DNA of 64,000 bases, from sequence record OR670491.1. The stretch is one strand, 5' to 3'. Below, one piece after another: positions 11,059 through 34,834 of the stretch; position 1 is the stretch's first letter, and each line of letters opens with the position of its first letter. A model generated the notes under the pieces. The model saw nothing but the letters and a program-made list of their open reading frames with translations, ran no database searches and was not told where the DNA came from. The position numbers and the translations under genes are program-made.

Positions 11059-11061
11059 ATG

Positions 11062-15585: not shown

Positions 15586-15598
15586 AAAGGAATAACAA

Positions 15599-15805: not shown

Positions 15806-15808
15806 ATT

Positions 15809-16000
15809 ATGCACGAATATAAAGAGTACTACAAAGATAAAATCCCAAAGTTTCTACAATACCAAATACCAGATGCTGCACTAGGAATAAATGATGTGCA
15901 CACCTGTACAAGATTCTATCAATGCACTGAAAGTTTTCTGGTAGATGATTATGACCAATGCAAGGTGTACTATGTTATTTCACTAATATATAGGTACTAA
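15809..16000 (+). CDS. family A microprotein
   Basis: EYKEYY; YYVISLIYRY. Confidence 0.75.
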   Translation: MHEYKEYYKDKIPKFLQYQIPDAALGINDVHTCTRFYQCTESFLVDDYDQCKVYYVISLIYRY

Positions 16001-16003
16001 ATC

Positions 16004-16183
16004 ATGCACAACGATTTCTATATACAAAAACTTATCGACGCTGGCCTGGAAAGCTTCCCGATAAATCCTGTACAAACAAAAGGATTGCACTGGTACTTCA
16101 TCCCCTGTACTAAAGCATGTATAAACCCCAGCAATTACAAGGATCTATACCACAATATATTAATACTCGCATTGAGGTACTAA
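16004..16183 (+). CDS. family A microprotein (59 aa, absent from ORF track)
   Basis: MHNDFYIQKL...LYHNILILALRY translated by hand. Confidence 0.65.
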   Translation: MHNDFYIQKLIDAGLESFPINPVQTKGLHWYFIPCTKACINPSNYKDLYHNILILALRY

Positions 16184-16186
16184 ATT

Positions 16187-16369
16187 ATGCAAGAACACTT
16201 GGAGTACTACAGAAGCCATCTCCCAAAGAAGGCACAAAGAAACTTCGACCAACAATATATAAACCAAAAGAATCAGTTCTATAATGCATTCTATTCGTCT
16301 ATGAAAACTATTGCTATACAAGGCAAAGACCCGTACTATAGCATCCTGAACATCATCTTCAAGTACTAA
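16187..16369 (+). CDS. family A microprotein
   Basis: EHLEYY; YYSILNIIFKY. Confidence 0.75.
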   Translation: MQEHLEYYRSHLPKKAQRNFDQQYINQKNQFYNAFYSSMKTIAIQGKDPYYSILNIIFKY

Positions 16370-16372
16370 AGC

Positions 16373-16558
16373 ATGTACAGAGACTTCTATATAAGTAAAC
16401 TTAATCCTGTACTACAAACTCGTATTCCTCCAGCGAAATTTATCCTCAAAACAAAAGCACAAAGGTATGAGTTCAAAAAGTGTACAAAAGAAATACTCAG
16501 TACTAAAAGTAATAAGAACATATACTATCAAGTACTCGTCCTTATATTCAAGTACTAA
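16373..16558 (+). CDS. family A microprotein
   Basis: YYQVLVLIFKY. Confidence 0.75.
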   Translation: MYRDFYISKLNPVLQTRIPPAKFILKTKAQRYEFKKCTKEILSTKSNKNIYYQVLVLIFKY

Positions 16559-16578
16559 AGTACTAAAGGAATAAACAT

Positions 16579-16773
16579 ATGCAACACCAGCACAAATTGT
16601 ACTACACGCAATTTCTTAATCAGCAACTACAACAATTTATACCTAATGAACCATTACCATATGATCATCCCCTGGGTGCACGCGTTTTCAAAAGAACTAT
16701 TAATGAACTATTGAGTACTACCGACGACGATTCCCTGTACTACTGCTTAATTAAACTTATATATAGGCACTAA
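16579..16773 (+). CDS. family A microprotein
   Basis: QHKLYY; YYCLIKLIYRH. Confidence 0.75.
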   Translation: MQHQHKLYYTQFLNQQLQQFIPNEPLPYDHPLGARVFKRTINELLSTTDDDSLYYCLIKLIYRH

Positions 16774-16774
16774 T

Positions 16775-16969
16775 ATGCAACTCCTGCACAGAGAATACTA
16801 CACACAATTCCTTAAAGAGAACTACAGAGATTCAGTCCCCGTAACTCCTTTTGACCCAAATAACCCAAGTTCAATCTTCCTCTTTAACGACGCAACACGT
16901 ACTGCACTCTGTACTACCAATAAACATTGGCACTACGCATTTGTACTTATACTTATATACAGACACTAA
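16775..16969 (+). CDS. family A microprotein
   Basis: LHREYY; VLILIYRH. Confidence 0.75.
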   Translation: MQLLHREYYTQFLKENYRDSVPVTPFDPNNPSSIFLFNDATRTALCTTNKHWHYAFVLILIYRH

Positions 16970-16978
16970 GGCACTAAC

Positions 16979-17164
16979 ATGAATGAGCACAGAGAGTACT
17001 ACATAAAGAGACTTCACCCCGACCTACGAGATACTATACCATTCGTTCCACATAATATACATGAACCCGTAGTGCAGTACTACTTTAATATAACAGTACA
17101 AGCCGCATTAAGTGAATATAGACTTGAGTACTTCACTGTACTAAAACTTATATATAAGTACTAA
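16979..17164 (+). CDS. family A microprotein
   Basis: EHREYY; YFTVLKLIYKY. Confidence 0.75.
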   Translation: MNEHREYYIKRLHPDLRDTIPFVPHNIHEPVVQYYFNITVQAALSEYRLEYFTVLKLIYKY

Positions 17165-17168
17165 CCCC

Positions 17169-17196
17169 TTGACATATACTCCAAGAATGATATACT
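17169..17196 (+). promoter_or_regulatory. sigma70-type promoter
   Basis: TTGACA-16-TATACT. Confidence 0.65.
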
Positions 17197-17229
17197 ACTT
17201 TCTATATAGAAACAATACAGAGATAACAT

Positions 17230-17439
17230 ATGCACGAACATAAAGATTTCTATGTAAGCCAACTCCCCGTAATAGACCAATTCTGGTTAGCTGATGCAGC
17301 ACCGTGTAATACAGATACTAAGTACGGACAATTGTGCTTTGTTGAATCTATAAAGAAAGTACTACAACAAGATAAAACTAAGTACCGTAAAGAAAAAGAC
17401 TTGTACTTTAATATAGTAGAACTTACCTTTATGTTCTAG
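17230..17439 (+). CDS. family A microprotein
   Basis: EHKDFY; YFNIVELTFMF. Confidence 0.7.
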   Translation: MHEHKDFYVSQLPVIDQFWLADAAPCNTDTKYGQLCFVESIKKVLQQDKTKYRKEKDLYFNIVELTFMF

Positions 17440-18580
17440 TATAGAGAATAGTACAGGATACTAAGGTCTAGATGTGTTCCTAGGGAAGCATTATAACAGG
17501 CTTTAACATCTCGTAAAGATGTTAAAATTCAGCCTGCTCGACGTCTGAATTGTTAAAATTCAGCCTGGACAAATGCGATCACTAGGATTCTATCTAGGCT
17601 GAATCCCGTAATCACAAGTACGCATATGTAATCATATATAAACATTTCCGTGAGAAGTTTTGAGTACTGTATAGTATTAAGAATCACCGTAGGAGCACAG
17701 AATGATTAAGAATGCACGGGAATGATTCAGAATGATTCAGTACTGATATGTCACTAAGTAGGCAGAGGAAGTCTGCCGTACTTTTTAGTTTCCAAGCTCC
17801 TTTTCCATTTTTCAAATTACATCAAATGCAATCAAAAGTAATCACGCAATGATTAGTACTGAATTATTACTTTCACCTTAATTTCAAATACCCGTTGACC
17901 CTTCGGGGTAAAATTCCATTACCCCTTGAGGCTCCAGCAAAAAGTTGGTTAGTACTCCATCCTAAATCTCGATCCTAAAAATTTTGGAGTACCTATGAAA
18001 TAAAAGTTGGATCTTCGAAAGTTGAAATTTACGTTGGGATGATTAGGATTTGTGAACTATAATGTAGTTCAAGTTGGAGTACAGAGTGAGAACAATCTAG
18101 AGTACTGAAAGATGAAATAACATCTTGACAATACAATTCAGTACTGTATAATGTTGTACATAGGGTGAGGGAACGGCGGCAACTGTTCCTTAATCTCAGT
18201 ATCATGTCGTGAGACATTACGCAAGTTATATCCTCCTGTGCATAGTGCTGGTGGTTATCTCTTGAACCTCATTTTTTCTCGTGAACTAAACAGTACTGAT
18301 ATTAACAGAATGGTAGCAGTACTGATATTAATCTAATGCATTATGCCACCAGCTTGTGCTGGTGGATTCCCTCTAACAGTATTCAGTACTACATGATGGT
18401 CTTCATCCTCCTGGGGTAACATAGTGAAGGTTATGATGGCAGTACTGAATACTCCAAACTCAAGATGGATTAAGGGTGTAGTACTGACGGATTTTGGGTG
18501 TAGTTACCCTGGATGGATTTTGGACGTAGATATGTCTAGCCCTCCAGAAGTCTGGAAGTAAAGATGGCTATCCATCTAGA

Positions 18581-18652
18581 CGGCTAAACGGCTAGATTTC
18601 TGGATGGCTGGACGTTTGGACGGCTAAACGGCTAAACGGCTAAACGGCTAAA
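18581..18652. repeat. CGGCTAAA 8-bp tandem repeat
   Basis: four perfect copies 18621-18652, a further copy at 18581. Confidence 0.95.
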
Positions 18653-18849
18653 CGTCTGGATGTATGGATGGCTAAATCAAAATTTTATTTTGTTTTTTCC
18701 AATAGTTCCCCTACCGCGTGGGGATAGTTTCCCCGCAGTATCTGGTGTTAGATTTTTCTGAATCTGGAATCATTATCTTATAAACTGGGGGCAATGTCAA
18801 CGGCCTGGACGGATATTTTTAAAAATTTTTTCAGTACTGAATTTTGGGC

Positions 18850-21148: not shown

Positions 21149-21230
21149 TACTTTTTTTTTACTATTCAGTACTGAAAACTATTTTTAAAAAGTACTTGCA
21201 AACTATGTTTAAAGGCGTATAATGTTTTAC

Positions 21231-21305
21231 ATCAGGACGGGGAACGAAATAAGTAACTTCCCGTTAAGTAGCCCAGGAGTAAGGCACACGAAAAACTCCC
21301 CTGAT
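21231..21305 (+). ncRNA. candidate structured small RNA / leader, copy 1
   Basis: follows TTGCAA-16-TATAAT; ATCAGG/CCTGAT closing stem, ACGGG/CCCGT stem, GGAGT/ACTCC stem with 14-nt loop. Confidence 0.55.
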
Positions 21306-21373
21306 AAAATAGTTTGACAAATGTTTTTAAAAGCGTATAATACTTACATCAACTACTGAATGAGGGTTACAAA

Positions 21374-21985
21374 ATGAAAACTATCACTACTACTACTTTC
21401 GTTATGGATTTTTCTGAATTGAACGCAGAACAACAAACGTCAGCTATCGAACTGGTTCGGGATCGTGAGCGTTCATGTGAGGATAATTTCTTTGCTGAGG
21501 GCGTTATCGAGTACTATAAAGAAACAGTACTACCAGAATACGGCATAGATGAAGCTGAATTGCAATACAGTGGTTTTTGGTCGCAAGGTGACGGTGCATC
21601 AATCAGTACTGACAGCGTGGACGCAGTGAAGTTTTTACGCAAGATTAAAGCGTTAACGAAATATCGTTCTATCCGTCACTTGTTGAATGAAGATGATTTG
21701 GCAATGAGTGTAGAACGTTCACACTCTCGCTACGCACACGAAAACACGGTAAGCGGGTACATTGAATCGGCTTACACTGATTTAACCGCAAAACAAGAAA
21801 CGTTAGTTAATGAGCTTGAGGAACTACTCACTGATACTATTCGTGAATTGTCCCGCAAGTTGTACCGTGATTTAGAGAATGCATATGAGGATCAATTCAC
21901 TACTGAAAACATTACGGCACTGATTGAGGGTAACGAATATCAATTCAATGTTATTGATGGCGTAGTGGAATCAATCGAATATTAA
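21374..21985 (+). CDS. conserved hypothetical protein (YSGFWSQGDGAS motif)
   Basis: 203 aa acidic ORF, own promoter and GAGG RBS. Confidence 0.8.
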   Translation: MKTITTTTFVMDFSELNAEQQTSAIELVRDRERSCEDNFFAEGVIEYYKETVLPEYGIDEAELQYSGFWSQGDGASISTDSVDAVKFLRKIKALTKYRSIRHLLNEDDLAMSVERSHSRYAHENTVSGYIESAYTDLTAKQETLVNELEELLTDTIRELSRKLYRDLENAYEDQFTTENITALIEGNEYQFNVIDGVVESIEY

Positions 21986-22075
21986 TTTAAAAAGTACTTG
22001 CAAACTAAGTTTAAAAGCGTATAATACTTTATATCGAGGCGGGGAGTGGTTCCCCGCTCAAACGAGGATTTAAAA

Positions 22076-22315
22076 ATGGCTAGTACTAAAACTTACAACG
22101 GACACAAAAACAAAACTCATTGGAATGTAAGCCTTTGGATTAATAACGGTGAGTCATTGTATCGGCTTGCTCAAAGTTGCATCGCACAAAGTAGAACTAA
22201 AGATATTGCTGCGGAATGTATGTACCGCAGATTAAAAGCCAACGGTACTACTACAACGCCGGACGGCTTTAAGTATAGCACTACTGCGATCCGTGCTGCA
22301 ATGGTTGGAATGTAA
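22076..22315 (+). CDS. hypothetical protein, paralog of 20035..20274
   Basis: shared N- and C-terminal blocks. Confidence 0.8.
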   Translation: MASTKTYNGHKNKTHWNVSLWINNGESLYRLAQSCIAQSRTKDIAAECMYRRLKANGTTTTPDGFKYSTTAIRAAMVGM

Positions 22316-22372
22316 TATTCAGTACTGAGATAATGGCGGGTAATAGTTCCCGCCTTTACTGAGGGTTATCTA

Positions 22373-22633
22373 ATGAGTAAAGTAATTAGCTATACAGCAC
22401 TAAGCAAGACATTATCTATTAGCCAGTGCACCGATGGTTATTGGCTATTTGATGAAACGCGTGGCATGAATTTAGCGATGCGTGCAAAAACTGCTGAGGC
22501 GGCGTATATTCAAGCACTGGAATACTACCAGGAACGTTTAAAGGAAGTAGAAGAAGATTATAAAAGCCTCAAAGCGAAAGTAGATCATTTCGTCGGTCAA
22601 TTCAACGAGGAAGACGACGACAAACAATATTGA
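22373..22633 (+). CDS. hypothetical protein
   Basis: stem-loop + GAGG RBS; C-terminal coiled coil. Confidence 0.75.
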   Translation: MSKVISYTALSKTLSISQCTDGYWLFDETRGMNLAMRAKTAEAAYIQALEYYQERLKEVEEDYKSLKAKVDHFVGQFNEEDDDKQY

Positions 22634-22719
22634 AAAAGTACTTGCAATTAGTTTTCAGTACTGTATAATGGTTTACATCAAAGGGAGAAATGGTTCTCCC
22701 TGGTAATGAGGAAAATAAA

Positions 22720-22941
22720 ATGGCTAATATCACTACTCTTTCCCAACTGGAAGCACTGGTGAAATCTATGCGGGAACATGCCGACAAAATCGGCGTACAA
22801 GATCCAGCCGTTTGCTTCTGCGACGAATTGAATGATGATACCCTGGTAATAGCAGAAGTCCAGGACGTTTCTAACTATTCCTCGCGTTACACTGGCGGCG
22901 TAGCAAATAAAGGCGACTTCTGTTTATACCTTACAAAATAA
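22720..22941 (+). CDS. hypothetical protein
   Basis: ATG 22720 behind cassette. Confidence 0.7.
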   Translation: MANITTLSQLEALVKSMREHADKIGVQDPAVCFCDELNDDTLVIAEVQDVSNYSSRYTGGVANKGDFCLYLTK

Positions 22942-22994
22942 CAACGCGGGGAGATAATAACTCCCCGTTACTTTTTCAGTACTGAATCATTTAA

Positions 22995-23076
22995 TAGACG
23001 GATCTCGGCACCCGGTGGGTTAGTGACTGTTTCGTCTTGATGTAGTAATTATGCCAGTACTGGATGCACTTGTCAA
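22995..23076 (-). ncRNA. orphan leftward promoter + CCCA-GGGTGC element
   Basis: minus strand TTGACA-17-CATAAT...CTAACCCACCGGGTGCC. Confidence 0.4.
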
Positions 23077-23184
23077 CAACTATTTTTCAAATACTTTTTA
23101 TTAAAATACTTGCAATTAGTTTTTAAACGCGTATAATGTTTTGCATAGGGGGAGCGGTTCCCCTGGTAACTAAGGAATAATAAA

Positions 23185-23421
23185 ATGCTTGAACAAATCA
23201 AATCAACGTCTGCGAATGTAACGGGAACGGTATCACACTTTACTAGTGATGAATCGCGTGGTGTTCCTTATTGTGCTGTACATGTAAACACTGATGGCAA
23301 CTACTGGTTTACGGTTTACGGATCATATTCATTTGGACGGCCAGGGCATCAAAAAATTCTGGATAAAGTACAACCAACGGGTAAAAATATCACTGCCGAA
23401 ATGTTTTATAAAAAATCATAA
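23185..23421 (+). CDS. hypothetical protein
   Basis: own cassette, AAGGA RBS. Confidence 0.75.
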   Translation: MLEQIKSTSANVTGTVSHFTSDESRGVPYCAVHVNTDGNYWFTVYGSYSFGRPGHQKILDKVQPTGKNITAEMFYKKS

Positions 23422-23505
23422 AGTACTTGCAATTAGTTTTTAGTACTGTATAATATTTTACATCGCAAGGGGAAACGGTTTCCCCTGGTAACTAAGGATA
23501 ATCAA

Positions 23506-23805
23506 ATGAAAGTTGCAATCATCGCCCTGGCTTTATCTGTATCGTCTTTCGCTGTTAACGCTTCCGTTGATGTACCGCGTGAAAAATTCATTCAGTGCAC
23601 TGTTGCAATGACTAACGAGGAAACGGCTGAGATTGTTACCAAATCCCTGGAACTGGCCCCTGCAATGTTTGCTAATGGCCCGTACCATGAAGAAGATGAT
23701 CAGGGTAGCACGACCATCTATTACGATGCAAAAAGTAAACGCGGTTCAGTTACTGTAATGGATACTGAGAAAGTTACATTCACGGGAGTAATTAATTGTT
23801 TTTAA
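23506..23805 (+). CDS. putative exported protein
   Basis: Sec-type signal peptide MKVAIIALALSVSSFAVNA. Confidence 0.75.
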   Translation: MKVAIIALALSVSSFAVNASVDVPREKFIQCTVAMTNEETAEIVTKSLELAPAMFANGPYHEEDDQGSTTIYYDAKSKRGSVTVMDTEKVTFTGVINCF

Positions 23806-23821
23806 TGAAGTACTGAATCAT

Positions 23822-23851
23822 AAGCCCACTATAAGAAGTGGGCTTTTTTTA
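23822..23851 (+). terminator. intrinsic terminator
   Basis: AAGCCCACT-6-AGTGGGCTT + T tract. Confidence 0.85.
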
Positions 23852-23927
23852 TTGTAGTACTGAATACTTTAAAAATAGTTTTGAAATAGTAGTTGACATT
23901 ACCAGGGAAAGGCGTAGAATGTATTAC

Positions 23928-23990
23928 ATCAGGACGGGGAACACTAAGTAGACCGCCAGTAAGTCGAACGAAAAACTGGACACGACCTGG
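23928..23990 (+). ncRNA. candidate structured RNA / leader, copy 3 (divergent)
   Basis: ATCAGGACGGGGAAC start; CCAGT/ACTGG stem with the same 14-nt AAG-N4-ACGAAAA loop. Confidence 0.5.
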
Positions 23991-24035
23991 AAACTTTGAT
24001 AAACTAACTTACACTTTAATTGAGGAATTAAAAAA

Positions 24036-24515
24036 ATGGCAAATGTAAAATCATTCTTTAAAGCACTGGTATCTTCTGACGTATCTATCGCCGCTGAATT
24101 GCTGGCTGACCTGGATAATGATACCATGAAAGCAGTACGCAATAATTTTAATATGGCGTACAGTGCAGCAAAAGAACTGCAAGCCAAAAAGGTAGCAGAA
24201 CTGGAAGCGGCAAAGGCAGAACGTGAAGCAGAACTGCAAGCAACAATCGAAAGCATCCAGGCGGCGGTAAGTGGATTGGATATCGAGATCGTAACCGATA
24301 TGGCACATAAAGCCCTAGCTGCAAAATACGGTGAAGTAAAAGCGGTTAAAGAAAAGAAATGGATTCAGGACCGCGTTAACGTAGTACTTGACAACGGGGA
24401 AGAATATCTTATTCCTGTACGCGGTAACTGCATTGCCGTAGTACTGGACGCGATTAACTCCAGTGGTATGACACGCGAGGAATGGATCGAAGCTCATCGC
24501 AAAGTTGAAGCATAA
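24036..24515 (+). CDS. H-NS-like protein with degenerate DNA-binding motif
   Basis: central coiled coil; C-term NGEEYLIPVRGNCIAVVLDAINSSGMTREEWI aligns without gaps to the H-NS DNA-binding domain as I recall it. Confidence 0.55.
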   Translation: MANVKSFFKALVSSDVSIAAELLADLDNDTMKAVRNNFNMAYSAAKELQAKKVAELEAAKAEREAELQATIESIQAAVSGLDIEIVTDMAHKALAAKYGEVKAVKEKKWIQDRVNVVLDNGEEYLIPVRGNCIAVVLDAINSSGMTREEWIEAHRKVEA

Positions 24516-24536
24516 CAATAAAAGTACTGAATCACT

Positions 24537-24563
24537 AGCCCACCTTAAACGGTGGGCTTTTTT
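24537..24563 (+). terminator. intrinsic terminator
   Basis: AGCCCACC-6-GGTGGGCT + T tract. Confidence 0.85.
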
Positions 24564-24790
24564 GTGTTTATCGTTTACCAGGCCACCAGCACCGCCTAGA
24601 AACGATTCTAACGCATTAAACTGATTATCTGATGCATTGCCCTAGCTGGTGGCGTTAAGGCTGTAAGAACGCGATTGAGAGCGTTTAAAGTATTTTGCAA
24701 AAAGTAATAAAAAGTACTTGCACGATTAAGAGATTAGCGTATAATTAATTACATCAAGGCAAGACACCTTAACTAACTGAGGATATAAAG

Positions 24791-24943
24791 ATGAATACTT
24801 ATGACCTGGATTGTTTTACTTTACAAGTAATGTCAGTATGCAGTAAGAAAGATTGGTCATCAAAGGAATTTAAAGCAGTTATCGCGTGTGCAAAACACGG
24901 CAAGACTATCAATGAAACGGCATCAATCATTGATAAACTTTAA
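24791..24943 (+). CDS. hypothetical protein (50 aa)
   Basis: own promoter, GAGG RBS; C-term resembles 28686..28829. Confidence 0.55.
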   Translation: MNTYDLDCFTLQVMSVCSKKDWSSKEFKAVIACAKHGKTINETASIIDKL

Positions 24944-25012
24944 AAAATAGTTTGACAATAGTTTTAAGTACTGGCATAATACATACATCAACTACTGAAT
25001 AGGAATTAAAAA

Positions 25013-25240
25013 ATGGCTATTATCATTACTCGCGTATCTGGTACTACTGGCAACGAACAAGTAGTTGCAGTCATTACCAACAAGGAAGGTGCGGAATTGC
25101 AAAATGCAATGAATACCTGGGCCGTTAATGAGTTCGGTCAGTGGGCAAGTGTAGCATACATTGAAACCTATCAAGTGCCGTCGATTAGTTTAACTGATTT
25201 GGGCGTTGAGCGTATCCTTTGCCTGGATGAATTAAATTAA
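25013..25240 (+). CDS. hypothetical protein
   Basis: own promoter and RBS. Confidence 0.75.
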   Translation: MAIIITRVSGTTGNEQVVAVITNKEGAELQNAMNTWAVNEFGQWASVAYIETYQVPSISLTDLGVERILCLDELN

Positions 25241-25325
25241 AAAAGTACTTGCAAAGTAAATCGAATAAAGTATAATACATTACATCAAGGGGAGAAATGG
25301 TTCTCCCCACTACAAGGAAACTAAA

Positions 25326-25469
25326 ATGAAAACTTGTCAATGTGGTCATAAATCTATTACGGGTTTTAAGCGGGGCGTTGCTCTTTGCCAGTACCATTAT
25401 AATTTACAAGTATGGGGTAAAGAATGGGCCGACCAGGTGGAAGCAGCAAAGAAAGCAAAAAGTAAGTAA
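25326..25469 (+). CDS. small Cys/His-rich protein (47 aa)
   Basis: MKTCQCG...LCQYH; behind cassette. Confidence 0.6.
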   Translation: MKTCQCGHKSITGFKRGVALCQYHYNLQVWGKEWADQVEAAKKAKSK

Positions 25470-25557
25470 AATATTATCACAGTACTATTGACATAGTTTG
25501 ATAGTACTGGCATAATAGATTTTATCAAGACAACATATTAATTTAAGGAATACAAAA

Positions 25558-25881
25558 ATGGCTAAAACTATCATTAACACCGTTTCCCTGGCTGCAATCC
25601 GTGCAATCAATGTTGACGGTAAACGTTGGACTGATACATATGGCAATACTTATCATTCTTGTCATGTAAGCGTTGAACTGGATAACGGTTTGAATGATCT
25701 GGCGGTTGAATCATTTACTTATGGCTATGAAGATGCATATCAACAAACGGCGTTAGATCTATTAAAGGAATCAGTAGACGGGCTTAATACTGATGAAACC
25801 TCCCTTACTCGTTTGTGCAATGATCTTAATATCCCGTTGCATTGTACTGTACAGAATGTTAAACGCAAAAAAGATCTTTAA
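25558..25881 (+). CDS. hypothetical protein, paralog of 32407..32730
   Basis: RWTDxxGNTYHSC...TYGY...VKRKKD shared. Confidence 0.8.
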   Translation: MAKTIINTVSLAAIRAINVDGKRWTDTYGNTYHSCHVSVELDNGLNDLAVESFTYGYEDAYQQTALDLLKESVDGLNTDETSLTRLCNDLNIPLHCTVQNVKRKKDL

Positions 25882-25961
25882 TTAGCTTTACTTTATGCAG
25901 ATACTTTGATATAGTGTCTGCATAGGGGAAAGAAATTAAATTAACTTAAGAGGATCGTATA

Positions 25962-26231
25962 ATGAAAAATATCAGTACTTTAATCGATACAGGTACTCAT
26001 GTTCGTCGGTCTATGGTTGCAACCAGTACTACAAAACAAGTACCAAGCGGTTATCTTGTATTTGTGCACGATGGTAAACTCCTGGAACGTTCAATCAATT
26101 TTGATGTTAAAAACAATTGCCGTTTTATTATCTTTAAGCGTGAGCAATATAAAATTGATTTACCAGCAAAGCCCATAAGCGGGGCGTACAACGTGCAATC
26201 ATTGTTTGAACGTCAACCATACACCTATTAA
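25962..26231 (+). CDS. hypothetical protein
   Basis: GAGG RBS. Confidence 0.7.
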   Translation: MKNISTLIDTGTHVRRSMVATSTTKQVPSGYLVFVHDGKLLERSINFDVKNNCRFIIFKREQYKIDLPAKPISGAYNVQSLFERQPYTY

Positions 26232-26282
26232 TCAAAACATCGTTAGCGGTCGATTTAGGCCGCGTATATTGGGGATTATACC

Positions 26283-26555
26283 ATGAACGTTAATCAAGTA
26301 CTGAATGAGATCGAAAGCATCATTAAACCAATGAAACGCATTGATGCTATGTTAACACCGGAAGAATGCCGCCTTTATGAGCGTTACAGCGTCGAACAAG
26401 TCCAGGCAATGGCTATGGCTACCCCAGCCGTTAAACCGCCTGAGAATGCGTTACAGGACGTTACAGGGGATTATATCATCAATCCAGTACTAGGGAAGAT
26501 GGCTGCAATCACCGAAGATCAACAAGATTACTTAAGTCAGTACTTAAAAGGTTAA
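26283..26555 (+). CDS. hypothetical protein
   Basis: ORF in + strand run. Confidence 0.65.
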   Translation: MNVNQVLNEIESIIKPMKRIDAMLTPEECRLYERYSVEQVQAMAMATPAVKPPENALQDVTGDYIINPVLGKMAAITEDQQDYLSQYLKG

Positions 26556-26560
26556 TTAAT

Positions 26561-26770
26561 ATGCTTACTGTACAGGATAAGATCGACATCTTAAAGGTTA
26601 ATATGTATGTGATTGATGCAGTACCTGGTAAAGTATTTGCATACGATGACAGTACTGTAAGCGATTTCTACTATAGCCAGGACGTGGGGGATCTTTCTGT
26701 ACAGTCGGTTATTGAAAACGTAGTTAATGCAGCGTATGAGCATTTACTTTCAAATAGTACTTGCAATTAG
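26561..26770 (+). CDS. hypothetical protein
   Basis: ORF in + strand run. Confidence 0.65.
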   Translation: MLTVQDKIDILKVNMYVIDAVPGKVFAYDDSTVSDFYYSQDVGDLSVQSVIENVVNAAYEHLLSNSTCN

Positions 26771-26839
26771 TTTTTAAACGCGTATAATGTTTTACATGAA
26801 GGGGAGAAATGATTCTCCCCACTAATTAAGGAATATGAA

Positions 26840-26986
26840 ATGAAAGCATCAAAAAAGAGTAATACTAAGAAAGCACGTTCAACCTTAGATGGGGTATTCC
26901 CTTTACGTTTCGTTGATGAAGTGGTGTCCTACCCGCCGGGCCTTACTCCTGAGATGGTAGAAAGTTTGCGTAAATCTAAAAAATAG
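26840..26986 (+). CDS. small basic protein (48 aa)
   Basis: behind cassette; translated by hand. Confidence 0.5.
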   Translation: MKASKKSNTKKARSTLDGVFPLRFVDEVVSYPPGLTPEMVESLRKSKK

Positions 26987-27067
26987 TACTTGCAATTAGT
27001 TTTTAGTACTGTATAATAGTTTACATGAAGGGGAGAAATGATTCTCCCCAATAACAGGAGAATCAAA

Positions 27068-27220
27068 ATGAAACAATACAACGCTCGGTTTGATGTTACT
27101 ATCGGTAACGGCAAAGGTCAATTCTCTTTCAGTACTCGCAAAAGTTATACAGAAAACTTCCTGCGTAATTGTGCACTGACCGCCGCTCAAATTAAACATT
27201 ACTTTCAGGCTAAAAAATGA
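27068..27220 (+). CDS. hypothetical protein (50 aa)
   Basis: ATG 27068 behind cassette with GGAG. Confidence 0.6.
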   Translation: MKQYNARFDVTIGNGKGQFSFSTRKSYTENFLRNCALTAAQIKHYFQAKK

Positions 27221-27306
27221 AAACATTAGCTTACTATAGTTCGGCCCTGGTCGGTGCATTGATCGCGGCGTTGTTAGTAACCTATCTATTCTTTATGGTG
27301 ATTTAA

Positions 27307-27450
27307 ATGAATCCAACAGGTTTAAACTATAAAAGTTGTTCGGCGTTTACGAAAGCAAATAAAGCGAATGCACGTAAAGCGAAAGTACAAGAATACATCA
27401 AGCAAGGCATGACGCGAAAGGCGGCGATTCTAAAAGCTAAAAATAAATGA
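27307..27450 (+). CDS. small Lys/Ala-rich basic protein (47 aa)
   Basis: translated by hand; follows a 29-aa hydrophobic ORF at 27217..27306. Confidence 0.45.
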   Translation: MNPTGLNYKSCSAFTKANKANARKAKVQEYIKQGMTRKAAILKAKNK

Positions 27451-27451
27451 A

Positions 27452-27541
27452 AAAAGTGGTTGACTCCGGTCAGCCATTTTGCTATTATATATTCATTGAG
27501 AGATAGCTCACTAGCCCACAGGGTGCATAAGTGTATCTATT
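27452..27541 (+). ncRNA. hairpin-embedded orphan promoter + CCCA-GGGTGC element
   Basis: TTGACT-17-TATTAT inside hairpin; CTAGCCCACAGGGTGCATAAGTGTATCTAT. Confidence 0.4.
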
Positions 27542-27671
27542 ATATGAGTATTGAGTACTGAAAACTATTTTAAAAGTATTTGTAGAAAGTACTTGCAAAC
27601 TATCTCAATAAGCGTATAATGTTTTACATCGAAAGGGGAAACGGTTTCCCCTGATAATAAGGAAACAAATC

Positions 27672-28013
27672 ATGACTATCTCAATTGCTCAATCTAACTT
27701 TGAAAACGAAATCATCGCCCAGGCACTGCGTTTAAATGATGGTCGGGCCGAAATTAATTACGGTTTCAATTCAGGCGGTTGTGAAAAATATCAGTACTTT
27801 GTAACGGCTGATGGCGGTGTCCTGGGTATCAATACAGTTATTGTAAACATCCAAAAAATTAATTTCAATGATCCAGACGATAGCCAGTTTTACATCACTG
27901 GCGTAGACGTGAACTATGAGGATGACTCACTAACTGATGATCACACTGGTGAGAAGTTAGAGAGTGCATACGGTGAAGATGATTATCAGTCAGTACCGGA
28001 AGATTTTGAATAA
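27672..28013 (+). CDS. acidic hypothetical protein
   Basis: own cassette; YFVTADGG and ESAYGE motifs. Confidence 0.8.
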   Translation: MTISIAQSNFENEIIAQALRLNDGRAEINYGFNSGGCEKYQYFVTADGGVLGINTVIVNIQKINFNDPDDSQFYITGVDVNYEDDSLTDDHTGEKLESAYGEDDYQSVPEDFE

Positions 28014-28110
28014 TATTAAAAAAATAGTTTGACAATAGATTATAGTACTGTATAATAGTTTACATCAAGGGGAGAAAAACTTCTCCCCACTAACAGAGAG
28101 AGAAAACAAA

Positions 28111-28323
28111 ATGGCTAATATCTGCACTGTACTGAAAAATGCAAAACAAGTTTTATTTTCTGATCACGATCATTTAAACAAGGATATTACTGGCGTTCGG
28201 AATATCAAAGATGTAAAAAGTGTTATGGGTATCTATTGCAATATGAAACGTGTTGGAACGTTCGGCGACAAAGTACTATACCAGGCAGGGGATTACAATT
28301 TTACACTGACTATCATTAACTAA
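28111..28323 (+). CDS. hypothetical protein
   Basis: own cassette. Confidence 0.7.
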   Translation: MANICTVLKNAKQVLFSDHDHLNKDITGVRNIKDVKSVMGIYCNMKRVGTFGDKVLYQAGDYNFTLTIIN

Positions 28324-28415
28324 AAATATATTACCAGTACTATTAAATCTATTGACAACGTTTGATAGTACTGACATAATAACTTTTATCAACTACACTA
28401 CTAAGGAATTAAAAA

Positions 28416-28595
28416 ATGGCTATCATCGCAAAAACTGAAATCGTTGGTCTGGATTCTATCATCATGACGTTTGAAGATCAAAAAGGTATGTATGTAGTTT
28501 CATATGGTGATTATGTTCGGGAGTATGAAACGGTAGACGAAGCCTTTGAAAGTTATATTCGCCAGGTGAATAAAGCATACGACGACTACCGCTAA
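28416..28595 (+). CDS. hypothetical protein (59 aa)
   Basis: own promoter, AAGGA RBS; translated by hand. Confidence 0.6.
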   Translation: MAIIAKTEIVGLDSIIMTFEDQKGMYVVSYGDYVREYETVDEAFESYIRQVNKAYDDYR

Positions 28596-28685
28596 AATAT
28601 ATTACCAGTGCTATTGACAAAGTTTGATAGTACTGTATAATAAGTTTTATAAACAGTAGTTAACTTAACCTAAGAGAGAAATAAA

Positions 28686-28829
28686 ATGATCGCACTGGAT
28701 TCATTCATCGACGCAGTACTGGCAAAAACTGGCGAGGATCTGACCGCAGAACAATACGCGATGATCGAGCAATGTCAGCAAAACGGTAAATCGGTGAAAG
28801 ATACTGTTAAGATTATCCGCAAGATGTAA
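28686..28829 (+). CDS. hypothetical protein (47 aa)
   Basis: own promoter; translated by hand. Confidence 0.55.
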   Translation: MIALDSFIDAVLAKTGEDLTAEQYAMIEQCQQNGKSVKDTVKIIRKM

Positions 28830-28835
28830 GATTAT

Positions 28836-28863
28836 AGCCCACTGGTTAACGCTGGTGGGCTTT
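28836..28863 (+). terminator. intrinsic terminator
   Basis: AGCCCAC...GTGGGCTTT. Confidence 0.6.
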
Positions 28864-28928
28864 AATCCTTTACCCTATACAATGCCAGTACTCAACCGTT
28901 TATCTCGTTAGAATGCGTTACAGGACGT

Positions 28929-29132
28929 TTGACAATGATTAGCATGAAATCAGTACAAAAACAAATAGAAACATTATCAAAAATTAAACGTAAACAGTAC
29001 TCGTTAGAATATACAATCAATGGTAACTATCATCTAATGAAAGAGAATAATTTTATCGTCATTGATGAATCATTGCAAGTTATTAGTATAGTACTGAAAG
29101 CATTAATCAATGACAGAAAAAAATTAAAATAA
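28929..29132 (+). CDS. hypothetical protein
   Basis: 67 aa ORF, weak RBS. Confidence 0.4.
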   Translation: MTMISMKSVQKQIETLSKIKRKQYSLEYTINGNYHLMKENNFIVIDESLQVISIVLKALINDRKKLK

Positions 29133-29136
29133 TCTA

Positions 29137-29220
29137 TTGACAATATCCTCCAGTACTGGCATAATACTTACATCAAGACGAGAACGTCGCTAACCCATAG
29201 GGTGCACAAATGTAACTATA
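29137..29220 (+). ncRNA. orphan promoter + CCCA-GGGTGC element
   Basis: TTGACA-17-CATAAT...CTAACCCATAGGGTGCACAAATGTAACTAT. Confidence 0.4.
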
Positions 29221-29227
29221 TAATATC

Positions 29228-29300
29228 GATCAATAAATGATCAAAAAAGTACTGGATCAATTTAGCATAAGGCGTATAATTCTGATCAATTCTTGATCAA
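29228..29300 (+). promoter_or_regulatory. GATC cluster around a TATAAT box
   Basis: GATCAA at 29228, 29239, 29255, 29284, 29295; TATAAT 29275-29280. Confidence 0.6.
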
Positions 29301-29461
29301 AGGCAATATACGCAGTTGAATTTATATAGACAGTACAAAGGCGTTACTATCCGTGGTAATGCTGGTGGATATGTAGTATCATATGGTTTGAATAAGATAA
29401 ACACTAGTAGTATTATTGTAGCATTACAGTACTATAGTATTTTTATAATGAGGTTAAAATA

Positions 29462-29719
29462 ATGGCAGTAGGATACGCGAAAGACGGGGCCGAACAAGAC
29501 GAGATTCACGCAGTGATTCAGGCCGCCGTTAACCACGCTAGAAAGCAAATTAACGCACAAAGAGAATCACTGGTACATTGCCTCGACTGCGGCGATAAAA
29601 TCCCTGAGAATCGACGCCAGGCCGTTATAGGGTGCATGTATTGTATTACTTGCCAGGAGGATCATGATAGTACTTTTAAAAGAGATCCGCGTAATTGTTG
29701 GCATAGATCTATGAGATAA
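29462..29719 (+). CDS. DksA/TraR family C4 zinc-finger protein (YbiI-like)
   Basis: CLDCGDKIPENRRQAVIGCMYCITCQ; N-term G-Y-A-x-D like YbiI. Confidence 0.9.
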   Translation: MAVGYAKDGAEQDEIHAVIQAAVNHARKQINAQRESLVHCLDCGDKIPENRRQAVIGCMYCITCQEDHDSTFKRDPRNCWHRSMR

Positions 29720-29782
29720 AAAGTATTGACAGTACTGAAAGATAGTGTATAATGTTTTATATCTTAACTGAGGATAGTAATC

Positions 29783-30139
29783 ATGGGAATACAACATATC
29801 ACGCGTACTACTGACAATGGCGAGATCACTGGTTATCAGGTACAGGGCAAAGTAGCACAATTGCAGTACTGGTTTGTTAAACGTGGAATCATTGCACCGG
29901 ATCTTGATTATGACCGTGTAGCGTTTATTGATTCTCTTTATGTTGATCCTGATAGTCGGGGCAATGGTGAAGGTAACGAATTAATGAATGCCTTTATTGA
30001 TGCCGCCGATGATTCAGATTGTATCATCTTAGAATGCGATACGGGAGAAGATAACGCCTTTAATCTTAAAGAATGGTACGAAGGTTTCGGATTCGAGGTA
30101 CTGATCGATAGTGAATATCCTATCATGATTTTATCATAG
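29783..30139 (+). CDS. GNAT family N-acetyltransferase
   Basis: motif A LYVDPDSRGNGEGNELM and C-terminal WYEGFGF. Confidence 0.8.
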   Translation: MGIQHITRTTDNGEITGYQVQGKVAQLQYWFVKRGIIAPDLDYDRVAFIDSLYVDPDSRGNGEGNELMNAFIDAADDSDCIILECDTGEDNAFNLKEWYEGFGFEVLIDSEYPIMILS

Positions 30140-30217
30140 TACTTGCATTTAGTTTTCAGTACTGTTATAGTACTTGCATCAAGGGGAAACATCTTCCCCT
30201 ACTAAGAGGAAATAAAA

Positions 30218-30406
30218 ATGGAAAACTTATCAAGTATTTTAGTACAAGATGATTTCGGTAATCCTGGAAGTGCTATCATTGTTCGGGGCAATAAAGCAAC
30301 GTTTGTTATTGCTGGTGGACCCGTACAGCGTAGCATTAAAAATAATGCTGTTACCATTAATAATGTACGCTATCGCTTAGATAAAGAATTAATTCATAAA
30401 CTGTAA
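30218..30406 (+). CDS. hypothetical protein
   Basis: own cassette. Confidence 0.7.
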   Translation: MENLSSILVQDDFGNPGSAIIVRGNKATFVIAGGPVQRSIKNNAVTINNVRYRLDKELIHKL

Positions 30407-30433
30407 TATTAATTTAATAGAGGATAACAATAA

Positions 30434-30757
30434 ATGTACATTCATACTACTATCACAAAGGAAGTCCGTTGCCAGTTCGAAAGTATTCCGGGCGTATGTT
30501 TCATCACTGGTACGTTTTCCCCTGGTGATCGTGATAATCCAGTACTGTTACAATTACGCCATCCATCATGGGATAAAGCATTTGATCTACCGTTGAATGA
30601 ATTCGCAACTACTGCTGAAAAGTACATTAAAAATATTCGCGAGAATGATCGACTATTCATTAATGCTTTTAGTGATGCCGCGTTAAGTGAGATCCATGCT
30701 GTATTGGTTGCAATCATGGAATCAATGGAGAAAACTATATTCAAACAAGGTGAATAA
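30434..30757 (+). CDS. hypothetical protein
   Basis: GAGG RBS. Confidence 0.75.
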   Translation: MYIHTTITKEVRCQFESIPGVCFITGTFSPGDRDNPVLLQLRHPSWDKAFDLPLNEFATTAEKYIKNIRENDRLFINAFSDAALSEIHAVLVAIMESMEKTIFKQGE

Positions 30758-30840
30758 AAACTATTGACAATGCAATCCAGTACTGTATAATAGTTTACAT
30801 GAAGGAGAGAAATGATTCTCCCCACTAAGAGGAAAGAAAA

Positions 30841-31053
30841 ATGCAAGGTCAACTAATCGTTCGTAAATGGTCTGATACTAACGAAAAACCGTGGGATGTA
30901 CAATACATCGCCCCAAATGGTGAATCCAGATATCAACCAGGTGTAACGCATAGTACTGAGCAATTCGCCGCCGCTCATCGCGAACGTCTGTTACAATCAA
31001 TGCAGCAAGGTTCCGGTGAAAAATTCATTCAGGATCATTGGCTGAAAGATTAA
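30841..31053 (+). CDS. hypothetical protein
   Basis: own cassette. Confidence 0.75.
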   Translation: MQGQLIVRKWSDTNEKPWDVQYIAPNGESRYQPGVTHSTEQFAAAHRERLLQSMQQGSGEKFIQDHWLKD

Positions 31054-31139
31054 AAAGTACTTGCACAGTACTGAATAAAGTGTATAATGTTTTATATCGG
31101 AAGGGGAATAGTTCCCCTCCGAACAAAGAGGAAAGTATA

Positions 31140-31313
31140 ATGGTCCAGGTAGAATTAACAGTACTGAAAGATCTGTTTTATCGGATTGGTACTACTGGCG
31201 AATATCCGAAGGGTGATAATGCAAAACTTTACGTATCACTCGACTTATGGCAACGCGAACAATTAGCAACGGCCTGGCGTAAAGGCAAAGCAGATAGCGA
31301 GGTGAAAGCATGA
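31140..31313 (+). CDS. hypothetical protein
   Basis: ATG 31140 behind cassette. Confidence 0.65.
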   Translation: MVQVELTVLKDLFYRIGTTGEYPKGDNAKLYVSLDLWQREQLATAWRKGKADSEVKA

Positions 31314-31459
31314 AAGAATTCTTATTTGAAGTAGTGTTTCAAGGTGTCGGTAATAACCAACTGATTCGATCAAGTGGTTATAATGTTAACCAGGCATGGA
31401 ATAACATTAAACAAATGTACCCGAACGCTATCACATATCGCAACCCGAAAGAAGTTTAA
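31310..31459 (+). CDS. hypothetical protein (49 aa)
   Basis: ATGA overlap, GAGG RBS; translated by hand. Confidence 0.55.
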   Translation: MKEFLFEVVFQGVGNNQLIRSSGYNVNQAWNNIKQMYPNAITYRNPKEV

Positions 31460-31470
31460 AAATAATTGAA

Positions 31471-31554
31471 AAAGGGATTGACTCCGGTCAGTCCCTTTGT
31501 TATTATATACGCATAGAAACAAATTAGCCCACCGGGTGCATAAATGTATCTATT
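31471..31554 (+). ncRNA. hairpin-embedded orphan promoter + CCCA-GGGTGC element
   Basis: TTGACT-17-TATTAT; TTAGCCCACCGGGTGCATAAATGTATCTAT. Confidence 0.4.
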
Positions 31555-31631
31555 GTTTGCTGGTGGCTAGTACTGAAAACTATTTTTAAAAAGTACTTGC
31601 ATTGTACTTAGAATCAAGTATAATGTTTTAC

Positions 31632-31704
31632 ATCAGGACGGGGAACGAAATAAGTAACCCCGTTAAGTAGTCCAGGAGTAAGACATACGAAAAACTCCCC
31701 TGAT
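31632..31704 (+). ncRNA. candidate structured small RNA / leader, copy 2
   Basis: closely similar to 21231-21305 with all three stems retained. Confidence 0.55.
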
Positions 31705-31773
31705 AAAATAGTTTGACAATAGAAAGTAAACGAGTATAATACTTACATCAACCACTGATAAGGAAACATAAAA

Positions 31774-32049
31774 ATGCGGATTCTACTGACAGCTAACGAA
31801 ATCGAACAAGTACTGACTACTAATCTGGAACAATGGAAACGTGAAGCAGATATCCAGGCGGTTCAATGCCTTAACGATAAGTTAACGCCAGATGACTTAA
31901 GCACGATTGTTGATCCACAATTTTATGAAGATATTCACGACACGTCTTTAAGCGTCGAGGATGTACTTGATAAGCACTACATTGATACTGATTTACATGT
32001 TTACGGTCGTAAAAACTTTATCACTATTCACGACATTTACAATACTTAA
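31774..32049 (+). CDS. acidic hypothetical protein
   Basis: own promoter and RBS. Confidence 0.75.
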   Translation: MRILLTANEIEQVLTTNLEQWKREADIQAVQCLNDKLTPDDLSTIVDPQFYEDIHDTSLSVEDVLDKHYIDTDLHVYGRKNFITIHDIYNT

Positions 32050-34745: not shown

Positions 34746-34834
34746 AAAGGGATTGACTCCGGTCAGTCCCTTTGCTATTATATATCCATTGAGAGATAAC
34801 TCACTGACCCATAGGGTGCGGAAGTGTATCTATT
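34746..34834 (+). ncRNA. hairpin-embedded orphan promoter + CCCA-GGGTGC element
   Basis: TTGACT-17-TATTAT; CTGACCCATAGGGTGCGGAAGTGTATCTAT. Confidence 0.4.

Follow-up and report, generated by a model that had tools for sequence, protein, structure and literature searches.

A structured RNA with a pseudoknot core in the early transcripts of virulent phages, from a jumbo coliphage to T7

In lambda-like phages, a nut site (boxA and boxB) sits in each early transcript, and the boxB loop has 5 nt. Small H-type pseudoknot aptamers run an A-rich strand across a short helix, and preQ1-type aptamers and the T4 gene 32 leader pseudoknot are small 5′-leader RNAs of two short helices with a one-nucleotide first loop. 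CsrB and CsrC display many GGA motifs in loops or single strands and come from free-standing sRNA genes with an intrinsic terminator, and ToxI-like antitoxins are tandem ~36-nt repeats beside an endoribonuclease toxin gene. The put RNA of phage HK022 suppresses pausing and termination in cis via the beta′ zinc-binding region. It is a structured RNA of ~65 nt that the host polymerase makes shortly after early promoters and that needs no phage protein (PMC8632103). Here, we analysed a window of 64,000 nt (record OR670491.1) from a 121Q/PBECO4-type jumbo coliphage, in which an RNA element resembles putL and putR in lying just downstream of early promoters, in being non-coding and in occurring more than once per genome; it lies in the early transcript as put does, at +1 in the window and at +40 to +100 in T7. 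Compared by description, the two differ in fold, the element being a pseudoknot that may carry an accessory hairpin and put a double hairpin, and in host, since put belongs to the temperate lambdoid phage HK022 and the element to virulent phages. Like nut, the element is promoter-proximal and combines a small hairpin with a conserved single-stranded box in front of it, but the apical region of this hairpin (H2) spans 14-17 nt instead of 5 and is engaged in the pseudoknot; to our knowledge, no N-like protein is known in the phages that bear it.

An earlier note had placed three copies of the element in the window, each at the expected transcription start site of a promoter, and both observations were confirmed, as were the positions and letters it gave (Table 1). 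The 15-mer ATCAGGACGGGGAAC occurs three times (0.05 expected by chance), as does the loop motif AAG-N4-ACGAAAA (0.30 by chance), and a scan of both strands of the 64 kb with a covariance model of the 41-nt core (R1, trained on 34 sequences from many phages) returned exactly the same three sites at 52.7-55.3 bits, with all other sites at 7.5 bits or below. Each copy begins 7 nt past the −10 hexamer of a near-consensus sigma-70-type early promoter, which is the geometry of the annotated T7 promoter A1 start site, and the promoter of copy 1 is a member of the window's repeated early-promoter cassette family (D1). The copies are single units 2.7-7.7 kb apart, not a tandem array, and because all three sit in the terminal repeat, each genome holds six. 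Every copy has the features that define the family, namely the TAAGTAG linker, both core helices, the A-rich strand and an early promoter upstream. A second promoter had been reported directly after copies 1 and 2 and is present at both, with a full consensus match. Copy 3 probably extends to about 24000, beyond the previously given 23990, and the gene behind it, formerly described as H-NS-like, gave no H-NS match and only sub-threshold noise in Pfam, its family being phrog_27871.

Table 1. Coordinates of the three element copies and their flanking features in the window
Feature	Position	Strand	Details
Promoter P1 of copy 1	21196..21223	+	TTGCAA, 16 nt, TATAAT
Element copy 1	21231..21305	+	R1 core 21263-21302, 52.7 bits
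Copy 1 outer helix	21231-21236 with 21300-21305	+	
Copy 1 accessory hairpin; linker	21237-21264; 21265-21275	+	
Copy 1 hairpin H2	21276-21299	+	Arms 21276-21280 / 21295-21299
Copy 1 inner pseudoknot	21271-21273 with 21283-21285	+	
Second promoter P2 after copy 1	21314..21341	+	12/12 consensus; drives 203-aa gene
Gene downstream of copy 1	21374..21985	+	203 aa, phrog_5162, without functional annotation
Intrinsic-terminator-like hairpin upstream of copy 3 unit	23822..23845	+	
Promoter of copy 3	23893..23920	+	TTGACA, 16 nt, TAGAAT
Element copy 3	23928..24000	+	R1 core 23943-23982, 53.2 bits; without accessory hairpin
Copy 3 linker; H2	23945-23955; 23956-23979	+	
Copy 3 inner pseudoknot	23951-23953 with 23963-23965	+	
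Copy 3 outer pairing	23929-23933 with 23986-23990, and/or 23928-23933 with 23995-24000	+	
Gene led by copy 3	24036..24515	+	159 aa, phrog_27871, without functional annotation
Terminator-like hairpin after copy 3 gene	24537-24558		22 nt past stop codon, strong
Promoter P1 of copy 2	31597..31624	+	TTGCAT, 16 nt, TATAAT
Element copy 2	31632..31704	+	R1 core 31662-31701, 55.3 bits
Copy 2 outer helix	31632-31637 with 31699-31704	+	
Copy 2 accessory hairpin; linker	31638-31663; 31664-31674	+	
Copy 2 H2	31675-31698	+	
Copy 2 inner pseudoknot	31670-31672 with 31682-31684	+	
Second promoter P2 after copy 2	31713..31740	+	12/12 consensus; drives 91-aa gene
Gene downstream of copy 2	31774..32049	+	91 aa, phrog_14947, without functional annotation

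The 41-nt core is a compact H-type pseudoknot of a 3-bp helix and the 5-bp hairpin H2, since some bases of the 14-nt loop form pairs with the linker flanking TAAGTAG. The compensatory changes once proposed for H2, the third hairpin, were upheld by covariation, and many further homologs keep the pairing: 95.4% of cells are paired, four of the five pairs show double-sided changes, 0 of 500 shuffles match the signal, slid controls collapse, and RNAalifold gives the hairpin independently. The loop drawn in the earlier note does hold invariant unpaired bases, but it is not all loop, since its bases 3-5 (G-N′-C) pair with the G-N-C that spans the end of TAAGTAG and the bases after it. The middle pair of this inner helix, flanked by invariant G-C and C-G pairs, is A-U in 24, C-G in 3 and U-A in 3 of 30 distinct sequences and unpaired in none, and one G-C instance was additionally found. 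Purine-rich invariant strands run between the two helices, and conservation (16 of 41 columns invariant, 6 more at least 90% conserved) falls mostly on unpaired positions while the stems vary; all three window copies retain every pair of both helices. Around the core lies an outer helix whose sequence varies. In the window this helix joins the first transcribed bases to the 3′ flank (nucleotide +1 to +75), and its pairing rests on thermodynamics and analogy because in this type it shows no variation among relatives; in T7-like phages it is a pseudoknot between an upstream hairpin loop and the 3′ flank, with double-sided changes at 5/5 pairs; and among non-T7 types it is found in 13 of 14, with a mean of 5.6 bp (3.7 bp in shuffles) and formed by six different sequences. 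Copies 1 and 2 adopt the previously described three-way junction (z-scores −1.6 and −3.2); in copy 3 the second hairpin is missing and the third is kept with its arms swapped. Relatives do not conserve the ACGAAA noted earlier in the hairpin 2 loop, and both the accessory hairpin and the outer-helix topology vary between phage groups. Collectively, the view of a structured RNA on the sense strand that starts at an early promoter has been strengthened by the many additional homologs, and we are highly confident that the element represents a real structured RNA family.

Such a compact nested fold with one or two pseudoknots, an A-rich strand crossing the 3-bp helix, conservation centred on unpaired columns and no dependence on the downstream gene might suit a self-contained RNA that needs no protein and is made at time zero from the strongest promoters. 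It would be either an aptamer that detects or sequesters a small molecule (e.g. a nucleotide used by the host in alarm or immune signalling) or a self-cleaving ribozyme of a new class that trims the 5′ leader, and it would have spread horizontally among unrelated virulent phages including T7. The element also resembles preQ1-type aptamers and the T4 gene 32 pseudoknot in size, in its two short helices, in its 5′-leader position and in having a one-nucleotide first loop and an A-rich strand over a short helix, but differs from them in its extra enclosing helix, the lack of a constant gene and the lack of an expression platform. As no Rfam riboswitch or ribozyme model matched at E values up to 10, and as the accessory hairpin and outer topology are not shared by all groups, we consider an aptamer or ribozyme unlikely.

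The element had been presented as a novel three-copy RNA, a description that no longer holds, as its core is common to hundreds of phage genomes, T7 included. It was found in 45 records of jumbo phages, Justusliebigvirus and Vequintavirinae and, with the phiA1122 version as query, in 587 records that cover T7, 13a, T3-like phages, K1F, Drulisvirus and podoviruses of Aeromonas, Erwinia and Pantoea. Munch- and Hallingskeid-type jumbo phages are among its bearers, the Justusliebigvirus and Vequintavirinae members are coliphages, and T7-like podoviruses account for more than 500 records. Between phage groups, the core is 73% identical and the flanks 49-50%, the random level, and Justusliebigvirus muut carries the same module of element, P2 and 91-aa gene as copy 2. 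Searches of 185,579 bacterial species genomes did not find the core, one phage-like contig excepted, and neither did those of E. coli genomes and plasmids; the family is confined to virulent phages. The Rfam 15 search that had been suggested as a check gave nothing at gathering score over the whole window and, with E relaxed to 10, only noise (10-15 bits) near copies 1 and 3 and near the T7 copy, with no match to CsrB/CsrC, ToxI, riboswitch, ribozyme or known protein-binding RNA families. The family is widespread in virulent phages of Enterobacterales and apparently has no annotation so far.

Members always lie on the sense strand within ~100 nt of an early promoter. In T7 the element occupies +40 to +100 relative to the annotated host promoter A1 and precedes host promoter A2; T7-like phages have it as a single copy behind a separate 5′ hairpin, where it heads the long early operon. 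According to the T7 annotation, RNase III cleavage at R0.3 severs the leader with the element from the mRNA. The earlier view that the element is not linked to an open reading frame was borne out by the differing downstream genes, which are 0.3 in T7, 0.45 in 13a and members of unrelated PHROG families elsewhere. A second promoter follows the element in most members, no member has a terminator or other defined 3′ end, and in the window each copy is followed by a promoter or a gene, with no terminator-like site.

This promoter-proximal, sense-strand position, without a terminator and co-transcribed with the downstream genes, is what would be expected of an element that, like HK022 put or a nut site, modifies in cis the host RNA polymerase transcribing it. 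The nascent pseudoknot would stay on, or bring a host factor to, its own polymerase, so that, even before phage proteins are made, the first early transcripts resist pausing, Rho or terminators. The length of 65-100 nt and the several helices resemble put (PMC8632103), the lone copy of T7-like phages stands at the start of the long early operon, and an RNA-only mechanism would be sensible at time zero. However, the same operon is also driven by T7 A2 and A3, which have no element, window copies 1 and 2 are followed by a second promoter, and the copy 3 unit comprises one gene and then a strong terminator-like hairpin; no sequence similarity to HK022 was detected, with none of its records among the blastn hits, and the double hairpin of put is not a pseudoknot. 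We judge polymerase modification somewhat unlikely.

Nearly all other early promoters of the window, about 30 within 18-38 kb, carry a short plain GC hairpin at the start site (families D1-D5), of which the element could be an elaborate form that stabilises the 5′ end of the downstream mRNA or serves in its processing. The window copies open with the same letters as the plain-hairpin family in the same cassette and pair from +1, E. coli 5′ stabilising stem-loops likewise pair at or near +1, and an IMG/VR contig has the same 15-mer running into a plain hairpin. Neither the TAAGTAG linker nor H2 nor the invariant strands are present in the plain hairpins, however, and R1 scores none of these hairpins. 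The element of T7-like phages starts only near +40, behind the 5′ hairpin, in a leader that is split off at R0.3; the 22 near-invariant and mostly unpaired bases would not be needed for stabilisation; and copies 1 and 2 are each separated from the next gene by that gene's own promoter. A stabiliser appears quite improbable. A function at the DNA level, as an UP element or operator for the next promoter or as a promoter-shuffling recombination cassette, might be considered because in T7-like phages the 3′ half of H2, rich in A, directly borders the A2 −35 hexamer, the usual place of an UP element, and this hexamer also forms the 3′ strand of the outer pseudoknot; between-group homology stops within P2, as cassette exchange would predict. 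Yet the arms of three helices co-change with pairing kept, which is unexpected for an operator or UP element, the spacing to the following promoter ranges from 2 to ~45 nt with none present after copy 3, and the element is always on the transcribed strand, which makes such a function extremely unlikely.

The earlier note had also proposed titration of CsrA or mimicry of a type III antitoxin, neither of which is supported. Window copies do contain CAGGACG and CCAGGAG as well as an A-rich loop, and in the jumbo phage the element is non-coding and multi-copy in the manner of the abundant CsrB/RsmZ-type sponges. However, only 9 of the 34 cores contain GGA, in each case within stems and never in conserved columns, the 5′ CAGGACG is absent from T7-type members, and conserved GGA loops, a terminator and a model match are all lacking. 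As for an antitoxin, the single units lie kilobases apart with no adjacent toxin gene and no ToxI-type match. We regard both ideas as very improbable.

The reading that we favour, tentatively and short of even confidence, is that the functional product is the RNA as such, which would bind a host factor. Host RNA polymerase would make the element as the first transcript of infection from the strong sigma-70-type promoters directly upstream, yielding an immediate-early RNA that is discrete and nuclease-resistant and whose invariant unpaired bases may be recognised by a conserved host component, which would be titrated or redirected before any phage protein exists. We favour the RNA as product because the downstream genes differ, a second promoter is usual, +1 pairs with +75 and a genome holds six copies; the +1/+75 pairing would give a closed particle. 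Since there is no terminator or defined 3′ end, a discrete RNA would need processing, and the single T7-like copy at the operon head fits a cis-acting leader at least as well. No known protein-binding RNA in Rfam resembles the element, and the former description as a protein-binding sRNA or leader is fair but unproven.

Few phages have been studied as thoroughly as T7, whose A1-A2-A3 promoter region serves laboratories as a standard reagent; a conserved RNA with nested pseudoknots in its A1 leader, unannotated in the records examined, would point to immediate-early phage biology that has been missed. The same RNA occurs in 350-kb jumbo phages and in rV5- and phAPEC8-type phages amid unrelated surrounding sequence. 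The structural model and the search model can be used for annotating several hundred phage genomes. As the first RNA made by the host polymerase, the element is a candidate RNA-only device for host takeover or counter-defence, which would act before any protein could.

The three copies that the earlier note had placed in the window were borne out: the 15-mer at the copy start occurs 3 times in the window against 0.05 expected, AAG-N4-ACGAAAA 3 times against 0.30, and R1, a covariance model of the conserved 41-nt core (the TAAGTAG linker plus hairpin H2) that was used as a search profile only, returned exactly three copies from the window, with the next best match at 7.5 bits. All three copies start 7 nt downstream of a -10 hexamer, which matches the spacing at the annotated start of the T7 early host promoter A1 and agrees with the claim that the copies start at promoter transcription start sites. 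Copies 1 and 2 sit in a longer repeat of promoter P1, the 73-75-nt element and a perfect second promoter, P2, and the three-way junction proposed for them is indeed their minimum-energy fold; of the second hairpin of that fold, copy 3 has neither the loop nor the 3' arm. The downstream genes vary (0.3, ocr, in T7; 0.45 in 13a; three unrelated PHROG families without known function in the window), and the gene led by copy 3, which had been taken for H-NS-like, gave no Pfam H-NS match and falls into a PHROG family without known function. A pairing predicted between the copy 1 linker and the Shine-Dalgarno region of the downstream gene was dropped, not being conserved in copy 2.

Across window 21-25 kb, identity is 98% with Escherichia phage vB_EcoM_JNE01 and 87-95% with Asteriusvirus jumbo coliphages, among them 121Q, PBECO4 and phAPEC6. 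In the relative vB_Ec-M-J, the annotated direct terminal repeat spans 1-21525 and base 1 aligns to window position 17757, so that all three copies lie within the terminal repeat, twice per genome; each jumbo genome has six element copies. The distances to the left end are about 3.5 kb for copy 1, 6.2 kb for copy 3 and 13.9 kb for copy 2. Small early genes are arrayed on the + strand from ~18 kb to 38 kb, each with a near-consensus sigma-70-type promoter, and after nearly all of these promoters a short GC hairpin at the start site is followed by a ribosome-binding site. About 30 early-promoter cassettes (18100-38130, +) have one common layout, namely AAAAAGTACTTGCAA or TTGACA, 16-17 nt, TATAAT, 7 nt, the start site, a GC hairpin of the GGGGAGAA/TTCTCCCC type and a ribosome-binding site; this looks like a common promoter-plus-5'-hairpin design and is possibly a substrate for cassette shuffling. 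The first transcribed letters of the window's early promoters (ATCGAGAG... in the cassettes) and those of T7 A1 are similar. The palindrome AGTACT, a possible factor-binding or modification site, occurs 307 times in the whole 64 kb against 22 expected from shuffles (a ~14-fold excess, with no shuffle near), many of its sites lying just upstream of early promoters or within the promoter spacer. A 12-bp hairpin with TTGACT in its stem, then TATTAT, is found four times and looks like a promoter set within a terminator-like hairpin; one lies ~100 nt upstream of the copy 2 promoter, and a conserved GCCCA-N-GGGTGC hairpin box stands ~50 nt after each of the four. The tandem array at 18536-18687 has ~19 repeats of 8 nt (CTAAACGG/CTGGATGG type) and sits ~0.8 kb inward of the inferred left end at 17757; it is reminiscent of the short repeats close to the ends of T7-type genomes. 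At 17753-17779, a weak partial core-model match (6.7 bits, E about 4), which starts with ACTAAGTAG at the position aligned to vB_Ec-M-J base 1, is probably due to chance. Nine paralogous units at 3265-13450 (- strand, period ~1.25 kb), with gene starts, ribosome-binding sites, a promoter-like sequence and a GCCAGTACT...AGTACTGGC hairpin in common, are a tandem family of paralogous genes, and a 39-52-nt motif containing GAGTACTACAG, present seven times in 15384-17271 at spacings of 180-600 nt, probably marks repeated small genes or domains. A tRNA/tmRNA scan found none.

Positions in the window of the element copies, their inner helices and neighbouring hairpins
Feature	Copy	Position
Element	copy 1	21231-21305
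Element	copy 2	31632-31704
Element	copy 3	23928 to probably about 24000
Inner 3-bp helix	copy 1	21271-21273 with 21283-21285
Inner 3-bp helix	copy 2	31670-31672 with 31682-31684
Inner 3-bp helix	copy 3	23951-23953 with 23963-23965
Terminator-like hairpins on both sides	copy 3 unit	23822-23845, 24537-24558
12-bp hairpin with TTGACT		27453-27480, 31471-31498, 34746-34773, 37496-37523
GCCCA-N-GGGTGC hairpin box		21023, 27508, 29187, 31521, 34801, 37546

By blastn with copy 1, the element was found in 45 records at 87-100% identity, among them the unrelated 140-146-kb coliphages Justusliebigvirus outra, muut and EmilieFrey and the Vequintavirinae A73, W70, A7_1 and A5-4, and in every one of these relatives it lies between a promoter and a second promoter. 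The gene downstream of it in muut is a homolog of window 31774-32049; outra and A73 have different genes there. The copy 3 search matched the left end of T7-like Yersinia phages, and in phiA1122 this linker and hairpin are found between the A1 and A2 host promoters. With a 45-nt phiA1122 stretch as query, 587 phage records were matched (543 with coverage of at least 80%), including T7, 13a, phiYeO3-12, K1F and other Kayfunavirus, Drulisvirus KpV71, and podoviruses of Klebsiella, Salmonella, Enterobacter, Citrobacter, Cronobacter, Erwinia, Pantoea, Serratia, Kosakonia and Aeromonas. T7 has the element at about nt 537-597, A1 and A2 being annotated at 498 and 626; R1 gave exactly one copy per T7-like locus, and its search of these loci found no second, decayed copy after A2 or A3. 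The copy-3 type is present in the jumbo phages Munch and Hallingskeid and in Vequintavirinae phage UPEC06. Identity between phage groups is 73% in the 41-nt core and 49-50% in the 70-nt flanks, the latter equal to shuffled sequence. An exact-pattern scan of 185,579 bacterial and archaeal species (one genome each) gave one hit, on a 2.7-kb metagenome-assembled contig that is T3-like phage DNA, and no copies were found in E. coli complete genomes or in plasmids; at this stringency, then, no host sequence emerged as an original that the phages could mimic. Metagenome and IMG/VR scans yielded only more phage-type contexts of the same classes; the 61 IMG/VR loci matched by the 15-mer were nearly all chance matches inside unrelated genes, and a gapped pattern with variable spacers, mostly giving chance matches among the matches listed, was then tightened. 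Unrelated virulent phages of Enterobacterales share the element horizontally, and hosts, prophage-containing genomes and plasmids lack it.

The position of the element bears on its main rival explanation, a put-like cis-acting modifier of RNA polymerase, put being an RNA of HK022 that acts in this way (PMC8632103). A single copy heading the T7 early operon would suit such a modifier, as would an element without any terminator: no terminator-like site follows it in any copy. Behind copies 1 and 2 and most relatives' elements, another promoter lies at 2-45 nt. Less in keeping with a put-like role are the element-free promoters A2, A3 and P2, which drive the same genes, and the terminator directly behind the gene of copy 3, which heads a one-gene unit bounded by terminator-like hairpins. 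In our judgement a put-like role is rather unlikely.

The compensatory changes reported for the third hairpin, H2 (5 bp), were borne out. Across 39 sequences drawn from all phage groups, 95.4% of its cells are paired and double-sided changes affect 4 of the 5 pairs (31 cells), a covariation reached in 0 of 500 shuffles, while sliding the partners brought pairing to 21-45%. Its arms read GGAG/CTCC, CCAG/CTGG, CCTG/CAGG, CTTG/CAAG or CCTG/CGGG in different phages, and RNAalifold predicted H2 independently. Within the core, 16 of the 41 columns never vary and a further 6 reach at least 90% conservation; most of these columns are unpaired. CsrA titration, raised earlier as an alternative, finds no backing here, with GGA present in 9 of 34 cores and in stems only. 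The ACGAAA in the loop of the second hairpin is not conserved among relatives, that hairpin being an accessory upstream one that is dispensable in the copy-3 type.

The apical region of H2 had been described as a 14-nt loop, but the region is not all loop, as its fourth base always pairs with the base after TAAGTAG. Among 30 distinct sequences this pair is A-U in 24, C-G in 3 and U-A in 3, without exception, and one G-C case was seen in a metagenome contig. Both the C-G and the U-A version are found with two different H2 backgrounds, and the pair forms the middle of an inner 3-bp helix, between a G-C and a C-G that never change. Since the strands follow in the order helix-1 5', H2 5', helix-1 3', H2 3' (helix 1 being the inner helix), the core forms an H-type pseudoknot. 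On the 5' side the helices are one nucleotide apart, TAA (plus one base in T7) stands at the junction, and a 10-nt A-rich strand with ACGAAAA runs across the 3-bp helix.

In T7-like phages, covariation backs an upstream 4-bp hairpin, and the 5-6 nt behind H2 are complementary to the loop of this hairpin; the resulting outer pseudoknot has double-sided changes in 5 of 5 pairs and at least 7 different loop/tail combinations. Coordinated changes in three helices contradict readings in which the element acts at the level of DNA. In these phages, the A2 -35 hexamer is the 3' strand of the outer pseudoknot (496-501 in T7 sequence L072, 590-595 in phiA1122 sequence L065) and the A-rich 3' half of H2 occupies the would-be UP element position of A2; the same DNA may serve two purposes there. 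Outside the T7-like phages, 13 of 14 sequences pair the H2 3' flank with the 5' part of the transcript, through six different helix sequences and with a mean of 5.6 bp versus 3.7 bp in shuffles, the per-sequence shuffle tests being weak (p = 0.002-0.9). In copies 1 and 2 this outer helix is the closing helix of the earlier note, running from the first transcribed base; because it is invariant among close relatives, it rests there on thermodynamics and analogy. In the window-type fold, the first transcribed base is thereby paired with base 75. A 5' stabiliser would fit the window but does not fit T7, and we regard it as highly improbable.

A search of Rfam for a known family gave no match at gathering or permissive thresholds. 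This speaks against a protein-free aptamer or ribozyme, of which the nested pseudoknots and invariant unpaired bases are suggestive; that account seems very unlikely. The GenBank records examined do not annotate the element, listing the region as 'none' or as short hypothetical ORFs. No paper describing the motif was found in the full-text literature, searched with literal sequence strings included, where such strings appear only within tables of T7 promoter fragments; older subscription T7 literature lay outside this coverage, and a previous description there is possible.

Collectively, the element is a transcribed-strand, promoter-proximal, strongly structured RNA that is independent of any gene. 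Selection appears to act on the RNA itself. Its own strong promoter is placed before genes that already have one, and this, the window-type fold closed from +1 to 75 and the six copies per jumbo genome together favour a discrete immediate-early RNA. Our tentative reading, which we hold to be possible and somewhat short of probable, is that the RNA would accumulate as a discrete, nuclease-resistant immediate-early species, that its invariant unpaired bases would be recognised by a conserved host component, and that the RNA may titrate or redirect that component.
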